Assembly (NCBI GenBank): GCA_020891255.1
Contig: BQFW01000015.1
Coordinates: 124,001 to 188,000, forward strand
Reading direction: 5' to 3'
DNA from: Entomortierella parvispora E1425
Taxonomy: Eukaryota > Fungi > Mortierellomycota
DNA: 64,000 nucleotides
Under the pieces are notes generated by a model. It was not told the origin of the DNA, did no database searches, and saw only the letters and a program-made list of their open reading frames with translations. Below, piece by piece: positions 27,383 through 53,143 of this stretch. A program made the translations under genes and the position numbers. Every line of letters starts with the position of its first letter. The stretch's first letter is position 1.

Positions 27383-29876
27383 TTACGAACCCTCCAAGTC
27401 AACATCGCTTGAATCGCTTGGCAAGCTTCTCTTGTGCTGTACTCTCGCAGCTCTTTGTTCCACTGAGCTGGTCACCGGTCTGGCCACAGCATCCAGGGAC
27501 CGAGAACACCGAATCCAGTGCCTCAAAGTCGTCCCATGGTATTTCTGCTTGAGCCAAGACAGATCCTTTTGAATCCAATCCGAGCTCAGCGCGTCTTTGA
27601 CGGTCCATCTCAAATCCGGATCTACTTGAAGTAGACCTCGGATCAGCTCCTTCACTTGCAGACTGGTATTCTTCCAGATCTGTGATCTAAAGTGCAAATT
27701 GCTGTCGATCGTTTTTTTTTTTTTTTTTTGTGAGCGGTTGATAAGCACGAACACTCTATCAAGGGCTCAATTGCTACATCGCCCATTCTTTGCCTACCCG
27801 GTGCGCGCCTTTTGATATATTGACAACTCGTCGTCATTGGCGTAGTTCATCGTGAATGGATGGCCGCCTGAGAGGATAACATAGAGAGTGATGCCCAAAC
27901 TCCAGCTGTCCGCCGTGGTGTCATACCCAGGACCATGGGCATGCTTCACGCCAAACACTTCTGGTGCCCTAAACAGACTCATCGTTTAGCCAAGCACACT
28001 GAAATGAACCTCATACGACTTTGAATCGATACTTACATATAGGCAAACGTCCCACACATTGTGTTCATGACGCCACTATCCCCAAGTTCCCGAGCCATCC
28101 CAAAATCTGACAAAAGCACTCGAGGGTACTTTGTGGCAGAGCTCAAAAGGAGATTTTCCGGCTTTAGGTCTACGGGAGACAAACAGACGTTCGTTCAGTA
28201 TGTCTTGGCATGCAGCCTTCCCACTGAGCATTCAACTAGAGCTTCCTGTTTTACCTCGGTGAGAGATGTCCAGATTATGAAGATGCTATAAGTGATGCGA
28301 CCATGGTTAGCCGCGGCTCTGCAGCGCAAGTGAGATCCTATTGCGAGAGTTGGCCTACTTGAAGGGCGAGAAGCGTCTGATAGATCATGAACTTGGCCTC
28401 CAACTCTGGAAGTGGTCCATGATTAAGAATGTAGTCAAAAAGGTCTCCTCCTAGCAGTCTAAGTGCCAAGAGTTTAGCACTTGCGAAGAACGAGAGTTGT
28501 ACAATCCGGCCGTCGTCAAGACTACTTACGCTTGCATGAAGATGTACATGTACTTTGATGTTTTGACAACGTCGACCACCGGTATGATGTTGGCCTGGTA
28601 ACCATTAAAAGACAGAAACCCCTATCAGTTGTCGGCCCTGACATCGTTGCATGGTCCAGGATGACCCAGATTCGAAAAACTCAAGCTTACGTGGTTGATA
28701 GATCGGAGAATACTGGCTTCACTGTCAATGTTGGTCCCGCCAGATTTTTCAGGGCAACTGAATCGAATGCGATCCATGATCTTCACTGCCAGTTGGACCT
28801 TAGTTCTTTTGTGGATGGCCAACTTTACCTTGGCAAAAGAACCCCTATTTTTTGGAATTGAGACTGTTTGGTGAGATTGCATGTGTGTTCTTGAACATGT
28901 CTAATTCTTTGTGTTCAAACCTCCTACCTTCCCAGGGTTCTCGGCAAAATTTGATATGTCTCTTCCACGGTCTACAGCCAAGGGCAAAGAAGTTAAAAGA
29001 CAGTATCTTCACACAAAGAGGTGAGAATAAACAAGATATGTACCTCAATCTCAGGATCCTTATGATCTGAAAGAGGAGTCAACAGATCGTGGTAGACAAA
29101 CTCTAGAATCTTATGGTCGATCAGCTTCCTGGTGGACCCACTCTCCATTTCTTGTGTCTGGGATCCTCTTACGATAATTGCATCGAATTCGGATCGAGTC
29201 TCCATGGGACAACACCATAGAATCGCCTTTCCCGATCAGACGTCCATTCCAATAGGTGCCATTCGTGCTCAGATCCTGTTCTCCCCATAGCAGAATGTTA
29301 GCAGCAGTGGTAGTCGCAGAAGGGACAGGCTAAAACACCATTTACCTCGCACAGGACAAGGCCGGATGAACTCTAGATTGGGGCAAGTCATGTCAGCCTA
29401 TGTGCACAGTCAATATTTGGTCGCAACGACGGAGCCACCTACCGTGTAAAACCGACAATGGCGATTGGATATCACATCTTCAGACAGGACAAGATCACTA
29501 CTCGCGCCGATAAGATTCCCGTCAGTCTATTTTAACTAGCTGCATTTGGTGGCAAAGCACGGTCGAGGCCTTACCAACTCCCATGTCGACCCACAAACAT
29601 GGACTTGTCGCGGCGAATGATAAGGCAAGCTTTTTGTAGGACAAGGATGAAGTCAGGTCAGGTAATAAATTATCGTTACACAGTGCGCAAGGGGCGGTGC
29701 TCTGTCATCCAATCTAACAAGGGGCAATAGTCCATACTCTCGAAGGTGGCTCTGTTGACCAACCATCCACAGACTTCACCATCCTTGTCTGCATTCTTGA
29801 GGGAAGAGGCCTGATCGCTGGGGGAGTAAGGAGCAACGGGCGAGAGAGTCTGAGTAGGAAGTGTTTGCGACACCAT
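27383..29876 (-). CDS. FHA-domain Ser/Thr kinase, Mek1/Chk2 type
   Basis: Multi-exon. FHA motif DLSTNGTYWNGRLIGKG; GSFAKV; canonical LAVKIM; HRDLKPEN; YPRVLLSDFG (Mek1-like); CGTFAYMAPE. The 3' end is uncertain because the stop overlaps a possible GTAATT donor. Confidence 0.85.
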
Positions 29877-30200: not shown

Positions 30201-32796
30201 ATGTCCTCTCATCTATCTCAAAATGCTCATCCGGATGCGGGCTACACATTGGATTCGACTTCGTCAACCGCAAATTATACTTCGAACGGCTTCACCTCGC
30301 ACAGTCCGGTGCTGCCCGTTCTTTCGCCTTCTCAGATTCGTCAGTTAGGCCAACAGTGTATGCACGAACGAGTGCAACCGCAAGTGCCTCAACAGCAGCA
30401 ACAACAAATGCAACAAAGCCAACCAGAAGAGCTTCGACAACAACATAGACAACAGCAACATCATATGCAACAAAGCCAACTGCAAGACCCTCAGCAACAA
30501 AGCCAACCGCAACAGATGCAACAAGAACAACAAGGGCAACACCCGCCACGACCCATGACTCTAGAAGAAATCGCGATGGCAGAGTTTGATCGAGAGACAG
30601 AAGAGGCTGTGGCTGATCTTAGAAGGAAGAGATCCAAAGAGAGAGCCCACAAGAAGCTGAGCATGAGGATGGAGTACCTACATGACGCACAAGAACAGGC
30701 TCTGCAGGCCATGGCCGAGATGAATCCCACTGCAAAGGCATCGATTACTACTACCATCACCACAGTTTCGCCGTCAGCCCCTGACAGTACCTCCAGTAAA
30801 CTCACGGTCACCACCACTGCCACTACGACCATGGGATCCGTTCAGGTGTCCCAAACTGAGGTTTCTTCTTCCGTTGCCGATCCTGTCATGTTCGAGAACA
30901 ACACCAGCAGCCGGCGCCAAACTCCAGCAAGAAGAGCATCCATGCCGCCACTGCGAATCGATACACAGTCAACGTCACCCCCACGCACTGTTGTAGCTCC
31001 TTCATCTTTAGAGACATTGGTCGATACGCCTCATTTTGGCATGCTCTCCTCTGCCTTGTCCCCTGCTGCATTTCCGTTTTCTTCACCCGTCCCTGCACTG
31101 GATAAGAAAACTGGAATAGTATGCGAACGTGATGCGCTTCCTTCTGCTGGGGCCCGATCCTCGCTTTCGCCTAACTCTTATTATGAAAACCACTCTTCGA
31201 CAGCCATTGCCGTGGTATCCCCTACTTCTGCGCACTCCTCTGGGGCCAAGACAGTACACTCGCGTAAACGAAAAACCACAGACGTTGCTGCATACAAACT
31301 TGGCGACTGTCTCGGAAGGGGCGGCTCGGCCGAGGTCTACAAGTGCAAGAGCAATGAGGACCAAAAAGAATATGTAAGTATCGCCCTTTTCTGCATTAAT
31401 CACTGTGTAGTTATTAATAATATGTTCTCGATTACTCTTGGACTTTTAGGCCATACGAATCATCCCAATGAAAGCTGTTGGCGACAAGATTGCCGATGAA
31501 GTGGCTCTCATGAAGAAGCTTTGTCACCCAAACATCATCGAGTTTAAAGACTTTCTCCATTACAAGAACTTGGAGTGGTATATGAGTAAGACGCAATCGA
31601 CAAAAAGAGAACGCACTACAATTGACATTGGGTGACCACAGTGACTCAAAAACACCTCTACCTCCTCTACTCTATAGTTCTCGAACTTTGCAAAGGCGAA
31701 CTGATGAAACTCCAAGACAATGGCAAAACCGACAAGGTCTTCTGTGAAAGCGAATGTCGGGACTATTTCCATCAGCTACTCATGGGAATAGAATATCGTA
31801 AGTCGCACCTTGTCTGCTGCTATAAATGAAACACATTAAGAACTAACAGTCGACCATTGTAGTCCACGAACACAACATTATCCACAAGGATATAAAACCG
31901 GCAAACATCTTGATCACCCAAGACAACACTCTAAAAATTGTTGACTTTGGGATCTCTCAAAAGTTTTTAACCGGCGAGGATATGACAATTCAATCTCGTG
32001 GACCTGGGACAGTTGCGTTTATGGCACCCGAACTCTACAGACATGGTGAAACTGAAGGAAGACCGACAGACATTTGGGCGATGGGTGTGACTCTCTTCCT
32101 GATGTGGAATGGGGAGATACCGTTTCACATCGTAGGGGCTACAAGGACTCCGAATTTTGAGGACCCCCCAAGATTCAAGGCTGGCACACCAGAACCGTTA
32201 AGAGCGTTGCTGAACAAGCTACTCGAAAAGAATCCGACCAAACGAATCACCATGGATGGGCTGAGGGTTGGTGCTACCTCCCGTCTGTACACACTTCCAC
32301 AAGCGACACACTGACTCGATTTTATCTTTTTATCTCTGTAGGATGATTTATGGGTGACAGACAGCGGCAGGAAACCGTTAGCCAGGTCAAAAGAAAGCAA
32401 TGTAGGCCGCAACATCGTGGTTACGGAAGCGGATAGGAGAATGGCATTCAAGAGCATCGGGGTGCTGTTTATCGTGGTAAGTAAACTCTTGGCTGTGAAC
32501 ATGCATGCAAGAACCTGGCTGATACCGACTCTACCGTTCTTTAGGCGGAGGCAGCTCGCAGGTTCAAAACCTCCCTGACAAGAGCTGAAGGAAAGGCAGT
32601 AGCCCACTGTCTGGCTAGAACTTCTCTCGACGCGACATCTGATGTTGAATGCAACGACGTGCTTTTTGATGCGGATAGGAATACGGACGCTGCATGCGAG
32701 GGTAGAGAAAATACGGGTATCGTCAAATCTGTGCAAGAAACAGGGATGGATGGAGAAACAAGTGAGGACGGAGGCGAATTCTTCACTTGCCAGTAG
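30201..32796 (+). CDS. PK1: coiled-coil + CaMKK-like kinase-fold protein, beta3 K->R, HKD catalytic loop
   Basis: Six exons. LGRGGSAEVYKC, Y|AIRII (CGA at 31456), DEVALMKK, HKDIKPAN, DFG, FMAPE, tail DDLWVTDSGRKPLARSKE. Gln-rich N-terminus. No disablements seen. Confidence 0.88.
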
Positions 32797-33188
32797 TAGC
32801 TACAGCTGAGGTGTGATATATTCCCAGACGTTTTATCATCCACTCGCCATGCCACTATAGCAGCCCCAATGACAGCCGGCTCCTGTCATGGACTCATTTA
32901 TAGCTAGATCTCCATATTGAAATAAGAATCAATTAATAACAACAATGTTCGCAGAGTACAAGCTTGCCTTCACCTCTTTGTACGCCTCTTTGCCAGCTTT
33001 GCCAGATCTTCTTTTCCACCGCTCCCTTGCCCCTTTGACCCTTTGCCTCGGCTCACAATGTCCCCTGGATTGCCCACAGCTTTGGTACAAATACAAAGAA
33101 CAGTTATTGTTCTCTGTCCTTCTCCTTCTCGCTCCGCCTCCTCTACCAAGACAACTCCCTACATCGATCTCTCAAACGCTATTGCACT

Positions 33189-34987
33189 ATGAAAGACCAT
33201 AATTCGCACTCAGACTACCAGTTCACGGACGACCCTAGGCTTCCTGTCCTCTCACCTTCGTCCATTGCTCAACAGATACGACACGATACTGACCCACTTC
33301 AGCGGAATCGTGAAACGCCAGTGTCCTCAATGAGTTCAGGCGAGATTTTCTTTGAGCAGTTCATGAAAGAAAGGCTCCAGCTACTACAAGAAGAGCTTGA
33401 AAAGTTTGACCGCCAAAGAGACGAACAAAGAAAGATGCTACTAGAGGAGTTTGATCGAGATACTCTGGAGAAACGCAACGCAGAGAAGGAAAGACTACAG
33501 GGCAAAAGGCAGACCATTGAAGACGAGCTGGCATCGTACAAGACTTACCTACAGACCATGGCACTCAACCAGAGGGACACCCCCGCTGCAGCTGCCTTGG
33601 CTGTCCCTGTGTCGAGCAAAGCTGCAATGAGCGGTAGCTACCAAAACGCGCTGGCCTCCCCAAAGTCACCACCACCGCTGCCACCCAAGCCTTCATCACT
33701 GGCGAGACCGAGTCCGCACGCTGTCTCCACGGCATCTACCTCGGCTCGTCGACATATAAACTTGTCTGCCTCTTCAGCAGACCACCATGAGGAGGACAGT
33801 GCTGAGCCACAAGAGATGGGTACCCAACCTAGCTTTGACTCCAAAGGCTCCCACTCTTTTTCGTCTCTTGACTCAAAACCGGAGCCTGAAATTAGAATGG
33901 TGAATATCAAAACGGTGAACAGAGTGGGCGACTATATGTACTCTACACACGACTACCTCGGAGTCGGTGGCTCTGCTAAGGTCTACAAGGCTCGAAACAT
34001 CACTGATGGGAGAGATTACGTGAGTATCCTTTAGCCAGCTTTCGCTATAGATCGTTTGTCATCCCTCATTGGTGCCCTCCACTAACTGATATGGATACAG
34101 GCCATTCGAGAAATCATGATTGCCTCTCACAGCGACCACGACACGGAATCTATGAAAGAAGAAGTGGCCATGATGAAGAAGCTTGACCATCCAAACATCA
34201 TCAAAGTTTATGAAGTCATGAGCTGCTCGTTCCCCCCGTGCTGGTATATGGGTAAGAGTGCTCTCTAGAATACCTACAGATATAAACCAAGTGACTAACA
34301 GCACCAATTGCTCCTAGTGCTCGAGCTTTGCCAGGGTGAGGTAGTCAAACTCGATCAAGATGGGAAGACTTTAGAATCCTTTGATGAAAACAAGTGTAGA
34401 GGGTACTTTCATCAACTGCTCTTGGGAATAGAGTACCGTACGTTACATTGCTATTCAACACAAAAAAAAAACAAAGGGTGAGAGAGAACCTGAGACTAAC
34501 AGGTCAAAAGAAATCAATAACTTGAAAAATTAGTCCACGAACATGGCGTTGCGCACAGAGATATTAAGCCTGGCAACATCCTGATCAGCCATGACGGTAA
34601 ACTCAAGATTGCAGACTTTGGAATCTCTCAAAGGTTTGCAACTGGTGAGACCCTGACCATTATTAACAACAGGCACGGCACTGCCGGATTCATGGCACCT
34701 GAAACGAACCAGGAAGTATACAGCGGAAGACGGGCCGACATTTGGTCGATGGGTGTGACCCTCTTCCTGATGTGGAATGGCCAGATCCCCTTCTCGGTTT
34801 CCAAGAGAGGACGCCCCTTGAGCCTTGCATCTCATGTGGAGTTTAAGGCTGGTACACCTGAACCTTTGAAAGCACTCCTAAACAGGATGCTCGAGGTGGA
34901 TCCAAATCAACGAGTCACCATGGATCAATTGAGAGTAAGTCATGTCTCCCTGTCTGTCAAAAGCCCCTGCCTCACAGTGGTTTGATC

Positions 34988-35022
<35 letters not shown>

Positions 35023-35401
35023 CTCTTGTAGCAGGATCCCTGGGTCACTGACAATGGAAGGATGCAACTAGCCAAATCCAAGGAAGACAATGTTGGCGGC
35101 CGCATTGAGGTCACTGACGACGACAGAGCAAGGTCCCTTAACACAATGGCAGTTGTGGTAAGTCAATTTCACCCTTCTCAGGCGTCCGTTTTGAGACGAC
35201 CCTCACGCAGTGACTCTGCTTTTTTAGGCGAAGGCGGCTTCCATTTTCGGACGAACTTTGTCAAGAAGCAGAAATAGGGTGGCATCGCCCACGGCTGCTG
35301 GTTCGAGCTCTGGAGGTGAGGTGGATATAGAAGCCGCAAGCGGACGTGGAGAACAGTTTATTACTTGCTTGAGCGAGGTGGACCATGCCACAGACATCTG
35401 A
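33189..35401 (+). CDS. PK2: coiled-coil + CaMKK-like kinase-fold protein, beta3 K->R
   Basis: Six exons at the same positions as PK1. LGVGGSAKVYKA, Y|AIREI (CGA at 34107), EEVAMMKK, HRDIKPGN, DFG, FMAPE, QDPWVTDNG tail. Confidence 0.88.
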
Positions 35402-35826
35402 GTTCTCCACAGCCCAAACAAGTACGTATCAAAATGAACCCGTTCCGTTGGACAACCACAAAGCAACCGCAAAGCAATAAAAAAGATTATTAAAGCTGCA
35501 GCGTGACCGATGTAGGCAAAGTCGAAGAGTAATTGTCGCTTCGCCTTGCCTTGCCTTTGCCAAACATGGCAGAGCTTTCTCTAAATTGCTTGATCCGCCC
35601 ACGTCATTGAAAAGGCCATTTCCCCCTCCACCTTTTCTTCTCTTTACACAATTATCTTACCTTGTAGCCTTCCCTGCCTCCATCCGTTGCTGGACCGACA
35701 TCTGCCTTGTTCACACCCGGCCGTTATTACAAGCCCTCCCCCCATACAGACATTCAACTGTGTGCAGCCTCTTACTCATCTGCTGCACTCACTCCGTTGT
35801 AAACGGACCTCGCCACTCACCATCCA

Positions 35827-38028
35827 ATGCAATTACAGAGCCCTCGAAACTCTGGTCAATCCAAGGACTGGATCGAAAAGATTGAAAAGTTTCAGGAGAT
35901 ATTCGAGAAGAGCCTGATCGACGAAAGACAAAAGGAACTCCAGAAGTACAGACAGCAAAGAATCATCGAACAACAGAAATTATTGGAGGAATTCCAGAGA
36001 AAGACCAAAGAGGGGGAAAGATCATTGTTGGACAAGCTCGATATCAAGGAGAAGGAAAGAAGGGCGGGATTCGAAGAGGCCAAAACACTCTTACTGCACG
36101 TGGACTTTCAGTACGAATCTGTTGAAGAGGCCGCCACCATCTCGTCCACCACAGTTCTGACGGAAACTGTCTGCGAAATTGGAGAAGACACTTTCGCGAC
36201 CGTAGCGGGCTCGTTACCGGCCTTAACGACTTCCAAGACGGCAAAGACGGGCAAATCACTGCCACCGGTGCCGCCCCCTAAACCCGCAGCACTAGCGTTA
36301 TCGACTCGACACTCTGTCGCGACTGGAAAAGCTACCAGGCTATCTCCCTCGTCTTCTTCCCCCTCTTCAGAGGATAAAGTGCGCAAGCCAGGTGTAGCCA
36401 CTGTTGGCTCAGCCCTTCATGTACTTCCGTCCGTATCCAAGATGATTGGGGTCAGTGCTATCTCGACCTCCGACGAAAAGTCCGATGTCAAGATGGTAAA
36501 TGGTGAATGGGTGAAAAAGATAGGGAGCTATATTTACTATAGTGAAAAGACCCTTGGAGAGGGAGGTGAGGCAAGGGTATTCAAGTGCCTAAACATGGCC
36601 GACGGTTGTGACTATGTAAGATCCGTGGAAATCATGCTTCTTTTACTACCCGGGTATGTTTATCCTTCTAACGATCACATTGGACAACACAGGCGATCAG
36701 AGAGATCCACATGAAAGTCGATAACCAAGCAGACAACAAGAAGATTACTGATGAAATAGCCCTGATGAAGAAGTTACACCACCCAAACGCCATCCAACTT
36801 CACGAGGTCATGTTCTGCCCCAAATCATCCACTTGGTATATGGGTAAGGCGCCGACCACGAGGCGGGTGAAGAGTTGGAATCAAACGTCGCGAGATGATA
36901 CCTATCCCCTGACATACGTGACCAATTGCTATTTCTATCCTAGTTCTAGAGCTTTGCAAGGGAGAATTAGTCAAACTTAGTCGGGACGGAAAGACTCAGA
37001 AGGATTTCAGCGAGAACCAGTGCCGAGATTACTTTCAGCAACTGCTCTTGGGGATGGAATACGGTAAGCTTCTCCCATCCCAGTGCAACCTATTGGCGAC
37101 TGAACCATACCTGAGACTAACTTTGCTATGTTTCCCTTTTTTTTTATATAGTCCACAAGCACAAGATTGCTCACAGGGATATCAAGCCCGGAAACCTGCT
37201 GATCAGCAAGGAAGGCAAATTGAAGATTGCAGACTTTGGTATCTCTCGTATGTTTGCCACAGATCAAGACATGTTATACAGGAGTGGCAAAGGAACTCGT
37301 GCCTTCATGGCGCCAGAAATCTTTAGAAACCACGACTGTGAACATGATGGAAAGCAGGTCGATATTTGGTCCATGGGCGTCACCCTCTTCTTGATGTGGA
37401 ATGGTGAGCTGCCGTTTATGATGGGATCTGCCTTGCATCCGAACTATGATTCCCCTGCAGGATTCAGGGATGGAACTCCTGAACCCTTGAAAGAGCTGTT
37501 GAACCAACTTCTCGAGAAAGATCCGACCAAACGAATAACTTTGGATCAGTTGAGGGTAAGGCTCATTGGGCTACCAGCACGATTTTCATAGACAATTCTT
37601 GACCTGATATTTTTTTTCTGCTCTCTACACTGCTCTTTAGAATAATCCTTGGGTGGTCGACAATGGAAGAAGACCATTGGCCAGATCCAAGGAAGATAAC
37701 GAAGGTGGCGATATTGTCGTTACGGATGAGGACAGAAGCATGGCTGTCGGTAGGATCCAGGCGATGGCTGGCGTGGTGAGTGAAGGTTTTTGTCCCCTTG
37801 CATGCACACAAGCACGCGTTTTAATTGCAGTTGTCAGCTGTCCTGACCACCACTCTGCCCATTGATATTTAGTTCAAAGCAGCCAGTTTGTTTATCGCTT
37901 CCTTGTCAAGAAACAAAGGGAGAACTGCGACTTGTACGTTGGAAGTTAAGAGCGAAGACGCCACGTCAGGAAAGGGGGTGGATCGGGGTTGCGAGAAGAA
38001 AGTTCTCGCCAGCCCTAGTCAGCTTTAA
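35827..38028 (+). CDS. PK3: coiled-coil + CaMKK-like kinase-fold protein, beta3 K->R
   Basis: Six exons. LGEGGEARVFKC, Y|AIREI (AGA at 36699), DEIALMKK, HRDIKPGN, DFG, FMAPE, NNPWVVDNG tail. Confidence 0.88.
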
Positions 38029-38535
38029 CTACGAAATTGAACCACTGAGCACCGTGAATCTCCTGGCCCTTCATTTGCTTTGGCTTTCATCGCGCTTCCT
38101 GACAAGGACACAGCCAAAGTCGCGCGTATTAACATGATGACACCATCATTTTTCTCGTATTTCAGCGTCTGCCTTTTGCTTTGCCTCTATCTCTTTGCCT
38201 TCAGATAGTGGTTTCCGTCTTTGTATTAAATGATGGTACAATGGTAGTGTCGTCTCGATTATGGCTTTGTTTACCCTGGAAGGTATTCTTGTTCAAAAAA
38301 AACAAACCAAAAAGTGTGCATCGGTCACTAGAAAACACATCCCTTGGTCATGACTCTTTGCCCATGGTGGACGTGCGCCCGAGTGTGTTTGCTTTGCCAG
38401 CCCCTGAAGTCGCTCGTCGGCTCCCTTCTTTTCTTGCAAGTTCCTAACCCCTCCTCTCTTTTCACTTCTAGCTGCCCAGTTTCCTCGTTTCACTCACGCG
38501 CACTGCTCCCCCACTCCCCTCCTCTACTCCCAAGA

Positions 38536-48203: not shown

Positions 48204-48332
48204 CTCATTTGCATGCACGCACGCTCCTTTCCCCCATCCCTCTTCTCTCTCTTACTCTCTCTTCTCTCCCCTCCTCTCTCTCTGCTCCCGGTCGCGCCTC
48301 CATCCTGGCAACCACGTCAGTCTTCCCCAATC

Positions 48333-50951
48333 ATGTCCTCTCCACCGGTGACGCCACCGACTATCCACGAACCCAGTCGACTCATTCGGGCTACAACTCG
48401 CCTCACCACAACCACGACCATGACATCGACCAACAGCTCAATGCTTCTTGAAGCCCTGACCCAGCAATCAAACGATAGCCACTCCTCCAAGAACAACGAT
48501 ACAAGACTCTCCCATCACCTTTCAGAATCCGCGGCCCTTTCAAGGGAGCAGCGTATATTGCTGCAAGAGCAAGCTGATTTCTCGGCCGTCCAACAACCAC
48601 AGCTCCAGGCTTGTCAATCGCAGCCACGACAAGAACCGTCGCACCAGCAAGAACAGAGCCGTAGCCAACTACTGCAATCAGCTTTCGACCAGCTGGACCA
48701 GGTGCTGATGGAGAAAAGGGATGCGGAACTGGTGACTGCGGCCCTACGGTATGAAGCAGAGAAGAAAGCTATCGAAGAAAGCTACCAGACCAATCTGAGA
48801 ACAAGGAAGGAACAACTGCAAACCCCGAACACACCATTTGTTCCGCCTTCCTTCATACCCGATGGCTCAGGTCATACAGCAGGACGAAGAGCGGTCAACG
48901 CTTATTCCAGTCCTTCGCAAGGGTCTACACCATCTGCTATCAGTGCAACTACCGTCAATTCAAGAACTTTACAGGTCGGCCCTTCCTCACTCAGAGCAGT
49001 CGATAGAAAACCAGATCACGGCAACCTCGACCTCTCCGTAAATGGCCCTGTCTCCATGCCTCCGCTTCGGTCTCCATCCCCGCGCCAGGTCCCTGGTACG
49101 ATCGCATTATCATCATCACCCCCACCACCAACTCCATCATCCATCCTGAACGTCCCCCGTGAGGATGAGGCGAAGCCAAAGTCTGTAGATGATATAACAG
49201 AAGGCAGTTACGGATACCCGTCAAGCGTTTCTATGATCGGTCGACGGTATGTTTGGGATTTGACACAGCGGCTTGGGAGAGGGAATTCCGCAAAGGTATT
49301 CAAGTGCGTTGACACACAGAATGAAAGTCGGAAGCTGGTAAGGATGTCTTTCTGAACGTTTTTTGGTCACCATCTACGGCCACTTTGTAGTGCGCTCACC
49401 ATCTTTAATTTCGAGTAGGCTATACGGATTGTTATGAGGCGCGAAGGAACAGAGGAAACCTTTCGTAAACAGAACAAGATGCAGAAAGAAGTCGCACTGA
49501 TGCTGCGGCTCAAGCACCCCAATATCATCCAACTTTACGAGTTTTTCTACTGCGAGAAAAAATGGTACATGAGTAAGTTTGAAGGGAATTATGAATTATG
49601 GATCGAGACAGGAAAGGCAACACAATCATGACCCAGCATGGATTCATAGATCATAACTCTTCATCCATTGTTTAGTATTGGAGCGCTGCGACTCAGTCTT
49701 GGTCAGGATCAAACGAGAGTGCCGTGACTGTAAGGTGTTAGACCGTCCAATCCTACATAACGATTGTCGCAGTAAAATATTCACAGAGGAGATATGTCGA
49801 GATATATTCAAGCAGATGGTCCTTGGCATTGAGTACTGTAAGATTGCGTCTTTTAATTGACCATCCTGTATTTCTTCTGGCTGAAAAAAGACACAACGGA
49901 GAACCTAACCGCGCTTCCACCCTATATTCAGTGCATGCACATGGTGCAATACATCGGGATATCAAACCAGGAAATCTGCTGCTCATCGGCCATGTTCTCA
50001 AAATTTGCGATTTTGGGATCTCGCAAGTTTTCCCCAATGGAGAGAAAATGACAATCGAAGGAGGTCAGGGGACAGGCGCATTTATGGCACCCGAATTTTT
50101 TGAGGGGAACAACGTTAAAACTGCCGAACCTACAGACATCTGGTCTATGGGTGTGACTCTTTACGTGATGGCGTACGGAGAACTTCCATTTCCCATCTCT
50201 GACAGAGAACCATGCTATCCATATTACAACAAGTTCAGGAAACAGGAAGGAGACGGACCGAATTCACCTTTGTGGACTTTGATCAAGCGCCTGCTGGAAC
50301 GCAACCCGGATCATAGAATATCCATGGAGCGGCTCAGGGTAACAGCAACACGAAAATGACACAATATCCCATTCAAAAACAAGGCTGATTGTTATTTCCC
50401 ATGTTTTTCTTGTATAGGAGGATCCCTGGCTGACCGAAGATGGCAAATTTCCTTTACCGTCAAAGCAGGACAATACTGGAGACAAGATCGTTTTGACAGA
50501 ACTCGAAATCAATTCTGCTGTCAGAGCTCTTGTGGTAAATCCTAGTGCAAACGATATGATCTACATTAGTCTCGATCCCGATTGCCTGTTCTTACACTCT
50601 CTCCATCTCTGATTCACATAGACCAAGGCCGTCAGCAAGTTCAAAGAAGGAGCACGACGCAGAGCCCAGAACAGTACCATCGATTCTGGTCTCTCCAGCA
50701 CCTTAGAGACTCTGCCCACACCAGAGGCACTCGAGGGGCCGAGTATGAGGTGGAATGACCTCGATACAGACCCCCGCTGGGACGACAACTATTATCAGAG
50801 CGGCCGATTTGTCCAGAGCGAGGAAGGCAACGGGCAGAGCGACCTAATTGTCCAGAGCGAGGAAGATAGCACGCAGAGCGACCGAAATGCCCTGAACGAG
50901 GAAGACAGCGAGCAGGTCGACTGGTTTTTGACAGCCCATGAAGATCTCTGA
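48333..50951 (+). CDS. PK7: coiled-coil + CaMKK-like kinase-fold protein, beta3 K->R
   Basis: Six exons. LGRGNSAKVFKC, L|AIRIV (CGG at 49425), KEVALMLR, HRDIKPGN, CDFG, FMAPE, EDPWLTEDG tail. Confidence 0.87.
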
Positions 50952-51104
50952 AGACATGACCCTCCATAAAATGAGCTTCTTTCCAACCTACATAAATACA
51001 AAAAGGGTCTTCCCCACACTCCCTCGACAAGACAAACTCGTTGTGGAAATGCATCTCTTGTTCATTTGCTCCTCTTCCTTTGTCCCCTCCTCTCCTCCTT
51101 ACCA

Positions 51105-53143
51105 ATGTCCTTTGCACCCTCATCCCCTCCCACCACGGCTGCCACTCAGGTGCGCTCGCCCTCGACTCCCTCGACCGTGCGAGTGATGCCCACCAATGTG
51201 ATGAACACTCCCTCGCAGCCAAGCACCTCTGCTAGCGGCTCCTCGGCCAATGCGAGCTCGACCGCTGCAGGAGAGACCATTGTCGGACGGGAACGCCAGG
51301 GCTCCTTTGGAGGCTCGTCCCGAGTCAAGGCCCTCAAGCCCTTCAACACTGCCAACATCAAGATTCTCCTGCTCGAGAATGTTAACGAGACCGCTGTGTC
51401 TGCCCTCCGTCAACAGGGTTATCAGGTAACAAACACAACTTTTTTTTTGCCTGGGCCAGGACTGTCTTATCGTGGAAATCTGACCCCGCAGAAAGGCAAT
51501 GGGCCTCTGGTTCAAACCCGACCTGGCCCTTCGTCCTTTGAGTCCCAGATCATGACGAAGTGACTCACTGCTACCGCCCTTTGGCCATTATCCCATCCCC
51601 CTTATTATTCTGTTATTCATCCTCGCTTTATCATTCCTTCTCACTAGGTCGAGACCCATGCCAAGGCTTTGGCCGAGGATGTGCTCATTGAAAAGATCAA
51701 GGATGTGCACTGCATTGGTATCCGTTCCAAGACCAAGCTGACCAAGAAGGTCTTGGATGCCGCCGAGAAGCTGGGCGTGGTTGGTTGCTTCTGTATCGGA
51801 ACCAACCAGGTGGATCTCGAGGTTGCGGCCCAGAAGGGTATCGCCGTCTTCAACTCCCCCTTCTCCAACTCGAGATCGGTTGCTGAGTTGGTCCTGGCCG
51901 AGATCGTGTTGCTGTCAAGACAGCTCGGAGATAGGAACAACGAGATGCATCAGGGCATCTGGTCCAAGGTCTCGGCCAACTGCTATGAGATTCGTGGCAA
52001 GACACTTGGTAAGAGAGATTTCTTTTGTTGAACCTTTTCTATGTTTTGTTTTTTATTTTTTTTCCTGCCTTGTCTCTGGATCTGTGTGTGCTTAAGGCTA
52101 TGATACGCTATCTTTCTGAGATCTTTTTATTTTCTCGGCCAATGCGACAGTCGAGTGGTGGCGCTTTTTCTTTTTTTTTTTTTCTTCTCGAGATACGGAA
52201 TTAAGCTGAAGAGTCACAGTCGGATCTCATTGGTCGGACCTGGAAGTGAAAGCCCCCAATCTTCTTTTTTTGGATCTCACCGCTGTCATATGGGAGACAA
52301 CGCAGCAGACGAGCTGCTTGCAGAGCTTTCTTTGCTGACCTTGGTCATCTCTTTGGAATCATAGGAATCGTCGGATATGGACACATTGGATCTCAGTTGT
52401 CTGTCCTTGCAGAGTCCATGGGCATGCGTGTCCTTTTCCACGACGTCGTCCCTTTGATGCCTCTCGGTACCAGCAAGCAGGTCCACTCCTTGGACGAGCT
52501 TCTCGAGACCTCGGACTTTGTCACTCTCCATGTGCCCGAGACAGAGGACACCAAGAACATGATTGGCGAGCACGAGCTGAACAAGATGAAGCAGGGTTCT
52601 TTCCTCATCAACGCCTCCCGTGGAACTGTTGTCCAGATCCCAGCTCTGGCCAAGTCCTTGAGATCAGGCCATCTTGGTGGTGCTGCTGTCGATGTCTTCC
52701 CCAAGGAGCCTGCTGCTAACGGCAAGTTCTTTGAGTCAGAGCTCATTGGATGCCCCAACACGTTATTGACCCCCCACATTGGAGGATCGACTGAGGAGGC
52801 CCAGTCCATGATCGGTGTGGAAGTCAGTCAGGCCTTGATCAAGTTCATCAACAGCGGTACCTCAATTGGTGCTGTCAACTTCCCCGAGGTTGACTTGCGT
52901 GCTATTCGGGACGAGGAAAACTCGATCCGTCTCTGCTATACCCATATGAACGTTCCTGGAGTCTTGCTCCGCATCACCAACATTCTTGCGGATCACAACG
53001 TGGACAAGCAGTTTTCAGACTCCAAGGGCAAGATTGCTTACTTGATGGCCGATATCTCAGATGTTACCCCAGAACAGATTCAGGATATCTACAGACGTGT
53101 CAGTGAGACGCCCACCAACATTGTTACCCGTGTCTTGTATTAG
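51105..53143 (+). CDS. SER33: D-3-phosphoglycerate dehydrogenase
   Basis: Three exons. KILLLENVN, IGIRSKT, GCFCIGTNQVDL, VFNSPFSNSRSVAE, GIVGYGHIGSQL, FLINASRG, TPHIGGSTEEAQ, C-terminal ACT domain. Confidence 0.97.

Follow-up and report, generated by a model that had tools for sequence, protein, structure and literature searches.

A tandem array of CaMKK-derived kinase genes with arginine in place of the β3 lysine in the fungus Entomortierella parvispora

The soil fungus Entomortierella parvispora E1425 carries a tandem array of Ser/Thr-kinase genes that, judged by sequence, derive from CaMKKs and are so far found only in this species and its close relatives. The array occupies positions 30201-50951 of the 64,000-nucleotide stretch of contig BQFW01000015.1 analysed here (the window), whose encoded proteins are deposited as EMPS_10721 to EMPS_10726. 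Seven related CaMKK-like genes, PK1 to PK7, were rebuilt in tandem, all on the plus strand and with every intron short, bounded by GT..AG and at conserved positions; five of them (PK1, PK2, PK3, PK6 and PK7) have open frames. Sequence comparison indicates that the founder of the clade fixed three changes in the nucleotide pocket, namely replacement of the β3 Lys by Arg, replacement of the third Gly of the glycine-rich (Gly) loop by Ala, and loss of the insert between β3 and αC. Pseudokinases are defined by sequence as lacking at least one of the VAIK Lys, the HRD Asp and the DFG Asp (PMC13519141). By that definition, the members of this Arg family are pseudokinases in which HRD and DFG are intact. 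We consider it probable, on balance, that they are KSR-like, ATP-binding 'VAIR' kinases of a narrow and rapidly evolving family derived from CaMKKs, and that they act through weak or conditional phosphotransfer and/or allosterically.

Arginine occupies the β3 position in 7/7 window copies, encoded by CGA at 31456 (PK1), CGA at 34107 (PK2), AGA at 36699 (PK3), CGG at 39234 (PK4), CGG at 44079 (PK5), CGA at 46751 (PK6) and CGG at 49425 (PK7). In all copies, a phase-0 intron separates exon 1, which stops after the β2 strand, from exon 2, which starts GCN-AT[ACT]/GTG-Arg; the Arg is thus the third codon past an AG acceptor. A sequence-only reading of this DNA had claimed that all seven copies read A-I/V-R once the phase-0 intron is removed, and every Arg codon it listed was recovered at its position, within A-V-R in PK5 and A-I-R in the other copies. 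Intron 1 of PK3 (36616-36692, plus strand, phase 0, GT..AG) lies directly 5' of the A-I-R codons. Introns at the same position, also on the plus strand, in phase 0 and with GT..AG ends, were placed at 31374-31449 in PK1, 34020-34100 in PK2, 39148-39227 in PK4, 46679-46744 in PK6 and 49338-49418 in PK7, and the corresponding acceptor of PK5 is at 44072 on the plus strand.

The predicted splice junction is found in a PK3 transcript. Sequencing run X2 shares its sample with X1, the DNA run that matches the assembly, and was examined over window positions 31300-37299. A 1161-nucleotide spliced contig of this run joins 36615 to 36693, 36843 to 36944 and 37063 to 37152, skipping three stretches (36616-36692, 36844-36943 and 37064-37151) that all have GT..AG ends; with the first of these joints, the transcript reads Y-A-I-R. 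None of the PK3 exon joints was seen in run X1. Run X2 resembles an RNA sequencing (RNA-seq) assembly in its adapter ends, its exon-only coverage and its GT..AG joints, and its depth over PK3 is clearly above that over PK1 and PK2, the latter being represented by an exon-2 fragment only. PK1-PK3 are also present in a second isolate labelled as the same species (X3, about 93% identical), for which no change is listed at 31450-31474, the stretch that holds the PK1 A-I-R codons.

The β3 substitution is one of several differences that separate the family from its canonical relatives. In an alignment of eight Arg-family sequences with 31 canonical CaMKKs, the β3 residue is Arg in 8/8 of the former and Lys in 31/31 of the latter, and a motif search found Lys in 72/72 canonical CaMKK relatives with a readable motif. 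At the third Gly of the Gly loop, 8/8 family members have Ala and 31/31 canonical sequences have Gly; Ala at this position also occurs in some active kinases, such as CDK7. A long Arg/Pro-rich insert between β3 and αC is a defining feature of the CaMKK family, and the spacer at this point measures 37-79 amino acids in canonical CaMKKs versus 11-20 in the Arg family. At six positions of the alignment, the family and the canonical CaMKKs have different, nearly fixed residues. Besides β3 and the third Gly, these are the last residue of DFGV, which becomes DFGI, an activation-segment position with T in the family and mostly S in canonical sequences, the position immediately preceding the Gly loop (L instead of I) and the variable position of HPN(I/V) (I instead of V). 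Invariant in both groups are G10 and G12 (the first Gly-loop glycines), V17 (the β2 Val), A30 (the VAIK Ala), the αC Glu, the HRD Asp, the catalytic-loop Lys and Asn, DFG, APE, and residues of subdomains IX and XI. The αC Glu, H(R/K)DIKPxN, DFG and APE, which were said to be kept in the intact copies, are indeed present in PK1, PK2, PK3, PK6 and PK7.

The Gly loop had been described as lacking both its aromatic residue and its third Gly. The second part of this description extends to the whole family, whereas loss of the aromatic residue is true of the window copies but not of two related metagenomic copies, which read GKGTFA and GSGRYA. Like WNK kinases, the Arg family misses the β3 Lys and keeps the rest of the active site. 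Unlike WNK kinases, in which a Lys is supplied from the Gly loop/β2, it has Ala at the third-Gly position, as the first reading had noted, in all eight aligned sequences, with no other conserved Lys nearby. The neighbouring basic residues vary (E/K/R/C/Q at one position and K/E/G at another), and WNK-like compensation was rejected.

Descent from CaMKKs, also proposed at the outset, is supported by sequence, by fold and by a homologous regulatory segment after the kinase domain. A phmmer search of the PDB gave human CaMKK2 as the top match (E 9.5e-48, 6cmj; 34-37% identity), followed by CaMKK1 and then LKB1. The best 60 listed solved matches comprise CaMKK, LKB1, CIPK, CaMK/CDPK and AMPK-related kinases; neither RAF nor KSR appears in this list. 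In the AlphaFold model of PK3, the predicted local distance difference test score (pLDDT) exceeds 90 over most of the kinase domain, and Foldseek searches with this model place CaMKK2 and CaMKK1 on top, with template modelling (TM) scores of 0.85-0.91 (0.85-0.90 for CaMKK2). In the tree, the Arg clade is monophyletic (support 99) and sits on a long stem outside the clade of canonical fungal CaMKKs (support 96). The family shares HRDIKPxN, DFG(V/I)S and G(T/S)PAFMAPE motifs with CaMKK1/CaMKK2 and the fungal CmkC/Ssp1-type kinases. The post-kinase segment of PK1, PK2, PK3 and PK7 aligns with the regulatory segment of canonical fungal CaMKKs (IGGLATVFKAITKFKR-like), through a 'PWV..G..PL...E.N' tail and the basic amphipathic helix that follows it; PK6, and PK4 as read, are without a CaMKK-like segment here. 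Neither the N-terminal exons nor the exon after the kinase domain had a Pfam match, and NCBIfam gave generic bacterial kinase matches only, all below cut-offs. Apart from the three pocket changes, the family also differs from CaMKKs in an 80-residue N-terminal helix and a disordered linker with a PxxP motif, both predicted for PK3, whose model also has C-terminal helices, including one at residues 527-547.

The family appears to have a narrow distribution. An exhaustive HMMER search was run with an exon-4 profile against 1.84 billion representative proteins, and its matches, among which large multi-kinase proteins crowded the top ranks, were re-scored with a hidden Markov model (HMM) of the family. 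The true members among these representatives are the window's own proteins and one 164-amino-acid metagenomic fragment; the next-best domains reach less than half the family-HMM score and have Lys at β3. Two word-indexed searches covering 5.8 billion proteins returned the E. parvispora proteins, then a gap, and then ordinary CaMKKs from Mortierellaceae, Mucorales, Ascomycota and animals, the Mortierellaceae CaMKKs being the nearest outside the family. E. parvispora itself retains a normal CaMKK, EMPS_04103, with YAVK. Metagenome contigs place further members in other organisms. On L001/L002, an intact PK4-like gene (AIR, CGA) is directly followed by a PK7-like gene (AMR, CGG) and then by the D-3-phosphoglycerate dehydrogenase gene that also flanks the array in the window, which makes the locus syntenic. 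A PK1-like gene with AMR (CGA) and the HKD variant seen in PK1 lies on contig L004, which stems from another sample, and contigs L003 and L005 hold members that are without exon 2 or without its start. No description of an Arg-type CaMKK-like family was found in the searchable literature, including full-text queries on Mucoromycota, a search that did not cover the key pseudokinase survey.

Several lines of evidence support the argument of the sequence-only reading that the Arg is an ancestral and selected feature of the array. Arg is present in 10/10 non-decayed sequences from at least three organisms and is encoded by three synonymous codons, CGA, CGG and AGA. Synonymous divergence (dS) has reached or passed saturation in most paralogue pairs; the paralogues share 42-58% of their amino acids. 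In the closest inter-organism pairs, the ratio of nonsynonymous to synonymous divergence (dN/dS) is about 0.16-0.21: 0.205 for PK7 vs L002-B, 0.195 for PK6 vs L002-A, 0.159 for PK1 vs L004 and 0.165 for PK4 vs L002-A. Among 307 kinase domains sampled as background, 12 have a β3 Arg and 10 of these lie outside this family; 8/10 of those outside are also without the αC Glu, HRD or DFG. Because most other β3-Arg domains carry further lesions, the Arg-only state is uncommon in this sample and looks maintained.

These data also bear on two sceptical readings: an array of decaying junk, and an Arg that arises from errors in splice prediction or assembly. PK4 and PK5 are broken, and the E1425 genome was assembled from Nanopore reads, albeit with Illumina polishing; its annotation was made by AUGUSTUS with RNA-seq hints (PMC8759367). 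A homopolymer sequencing error, however, cannot yield a CGN or AGA codon, and the same Arg is encoded in independent metagenome assemblies, while the second isolate has no listed change at the PK1 codons. With five open-frame copies, a dN/dS of about 0.2 and the PK3 junction present in a spliced contig, we regard junk or artefact as highly improbable. The narrower proposal that all copies are decaying pseudogenes was rejected because of the open frames, the dN/dS and the PK3 spliced transcript.

The nearest functional analogues of the Arg family, by analogy only, are KSR1 and KSR2, the mammalian kinase suppressors of Ras, in which a natural change from VAIK to VAIR is likewise accompanied by retention of HRD and DFG. 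KSR2 binds ATP-Mg and has low, debated activity (PMC4718504, PMC13519141); in its structure, αC is swung out and the Arg lies near the DFG Asp. The two groups share only the kinase fold, KSR belonging to the RAF/TKL group and the Arg family grouping with CaMKK. KSR works with RAF and MEK. A second point of comparison is STRADα, an ATP-binding pseudokinase that partners LKB1 and activates a kinase upstream of AMPK (PMC4718504). Among solved structures, LKB1 comes second to the CaMKKs as a relative of the Arg family, but STRADα has lost its DFG motif (GLR) and binds ATP without a cation, whereas the Arg family keeps HRD, the catalytic-loop Asn and DFG.

Since the complete catalytic set survives in very divergent paralogues, we think that ATP binding is retained and find some phosphotransfer plausible. 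The founder of the clade exchanged the β3 Lys for Arg and the Gly-loop Gly for Ala and dropped the β3-αC insert, and purifying selection kept invariant all other residues needed for Mg-ATP binding and phosphate transfer. In the mechanism we propose, the resulting proteins would still bind ATP and would most likely act in the manner of KSR1/2, by weak or conditional phosphotransfer and/or by ATP-dependent allosteric partnering. Their likely setting would be signalling of the Ca2+/calmodulin-CaMKK type, with assembly perhaps mediated by the long N-terminal helix and the PxxP linker. In PK1, PK2, PK3 and PK7, the retained CaMKK-like autoinhibitory/calmodulin-type helix may add a further layer of regulation.

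It is possible, though not probable, that these are instead fully competent kinases in which Arg does the job of the β3 Lys within a remodelled pocket and the pseudokinase label is merely formal. The HRD Asp, catalytic-loop Lys and Asn, DFG Asp, APE and the activation-segment GT.AFMAPE are invariant despite saturated synonymous sites, and the family is free of the additional lesions found in most other β3-Arg domains of the background sample. Against full activity stands the fact that Lys to Arg at β3 is the standard kinase-dead mutation. In addition, KSR2, the one well-studied natural VAIR kinase, shows only low, disputed activity (PMC13519141). The more specific claim that the β3 Arg is a working catalytic residue, so that these would be naturally selected VAIR kinases that phosphorylate efficiently, enabled by the Gly-loop Gly-to-Ala change and insert loss, strikes us as unlikely.

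Several points count against the KSR-like reading itself. The invariant HRD Asp, catalytic-loop Lys and P+1 loop are no less compatible with full than with weak activity. Activity, ATP binding, partners and calmodulin binding are all inferred. Run X2 is labelled 'DNA?' and is read as RNA because of its GT..AG joints and adapter ends. RNA support is confined to PK3; introns 1 and 4 of PK1 are covered by unspliced, low-depth contigs. Finally, the Arg clade forms a polytomy with animal CaMKKs, and according to a warning from the tool its placement relative to animal and fungal CaMKKs may reflect a long-branch artefact.

The rate of protein evolution offers some support for a different explanation, in which the proteins are catalytically dead scaffolds or decoys and the pocket serves nucleotide-dependent conformation or partner binding, for example in baits for foreign effectors or competitors of canonical CaMKKs. 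The D-3-phosphoglycerate dehydrogenase neighbour, compared between organisms, has a dN of 0.009 and a dS of 0.33, while the kinases have a dN of 0.18; on these estimates, the proteins of the array kinases change about 20 times faster yet are clearly constrained. The formal pseudokinase signature is present, and copies are born and lost in the array, which adjoins duplicated secreted-peptide genes. However, pseudokinases that have long been non-catalytic have usually lost HRD or DFG residues, all of which are invariant here, and any partner or effector is purely hypothetical. Dead scaffolds or decoys therefore seem quite unlikely to us, and specific scaffold, decoy or sensor roles are guesses.

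KSR is the main natural case differing at the β3 Lys only, and its activity is still debated; the fungal clade provides an independent natural Lys-to-Arg replicate, with several very divergent paralogues, related copies in other organisms and a full catalytic set kept under purifying selection. Small soluble domains and Arg-to-Lys revertants would make a simple system for asking whether a β3 Arg supports ATP binding only or real catalysis. Should the Arg prove catalytic, the textbook 'kinase-dead' substitution would be tolerable in an otherwise canonical scaffold. The array also illustrates the origin of a fast-evolving, lineage-restricted gene family from a housekeeping CaMKK. Any role of these proteins would be played in Mortierellaceae, fungi with bacterial endosymbionts.

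The rebuilt genes differ in part from the deposited annotation. PK1 (30201-32796, plus strand) is intact, with six exons encoding 739 amino acids and HKDIKPAN in its catalytic loop, and is annotated only as the front half of EMPS_10721. PK2 (33189-35401, plus strand) is also intact. The 1028-amino-acid EMPS_10721 (window positions 30201-35401) is an artificial fusion of PK1 exons 1-3 with PK2, minus PK1 exons 4-6 and PK2 exon 3; PK1 and PK2 are two separate genes, not one fused gene. PK3 (35827-38028, plus strand) encodes 584 amino acids, has its introns 1-3 backed by the spliced contig, and corresponds to EMPS_10722, to which the rebuilt protein is 100% identical across all 533 modelled residues, up to the last exon. 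PK6 (45896-47954, plus strand; 573 amino acids; Gly loop GNGTSA) and PK7 (48333-50951, plus strand; 724 amino acids) agree as rebuilt with EMPS_10725 and EMPS_10726, respectively. PK7 is the most divergent copy and has a 14-amino-acid insert in exon 3. Long T or A homopolymer runs lie within introns, for example in PK2 intron 4 (34978-35031), where contigs of the DNA run break.

Tandem duplication, segmental duplication, rapid divergence of the proteins and, in PK4 and PK5, the occasional death of a gene have shaped the array. PK4 (38536-40463, plus strand), annotated as the truncated 367-amino-acid protein EMPS_10723, is broken by a TGG-to-TGA stop at 39890-39892 and one extra A in an A-run near 39927-39931. 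Its counterpart on L001/L002 is intact and syntenic, and the low dN/dS of PK4 against L002-A suggests that its inactivation was recent. PK5 (about 44073-44711, plus strand) is a decayed chimeric relic in which PK7-like exons 2-3 are joined to a PK4-like 3' half; it contains several stops and has no HRD/DFG region, with the AVR motif still readable. The gap between PK4 and PK6 (40254-45503) is made of repeated PK 3'-end fragments plus DNA from downstream of the PK 3' end, with repeat copies at 40254-40875, 40927-41584, 42087-42415 and 44377-45503 (72-85% identity). Since the PK4-like and PK7-like genes are adjacent on L002, the stretch after PK4 up to PK6, PK5 included, is absent there and was probably added later.

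Small genes for secreted 8-cysteine peptides lie in this region at about 41500-41670 and 45179-45370, with a start-only fragment at 40772. They sit in duplicated segments downstream of PK4-like 3' ends, and the peptides consist of a signal peptide (MHTKLLLVVLSILVIP...) followed by a C..C..C..C..CC..C..C pattern. Downstream of PK7, the D-3-phosphoglycerate dehydrogenase gene (2-Hacid_dh; 51066-53143) is syntenic with its counterpart on L002 (4558-6867), with 84% nucleotide and about 98% amino-acid identity, and this pair supplied the baseline dS. On the other side of the array, a multi-exon FHA/Mek1-like Ser/Thr kinase gene (about 27400-29300, minus strand) lies head to head with PK1; it carries canonical LAVK, DLKPEN and DFG motifs, in line with the normal β3 Lys first noted for this neighbour.

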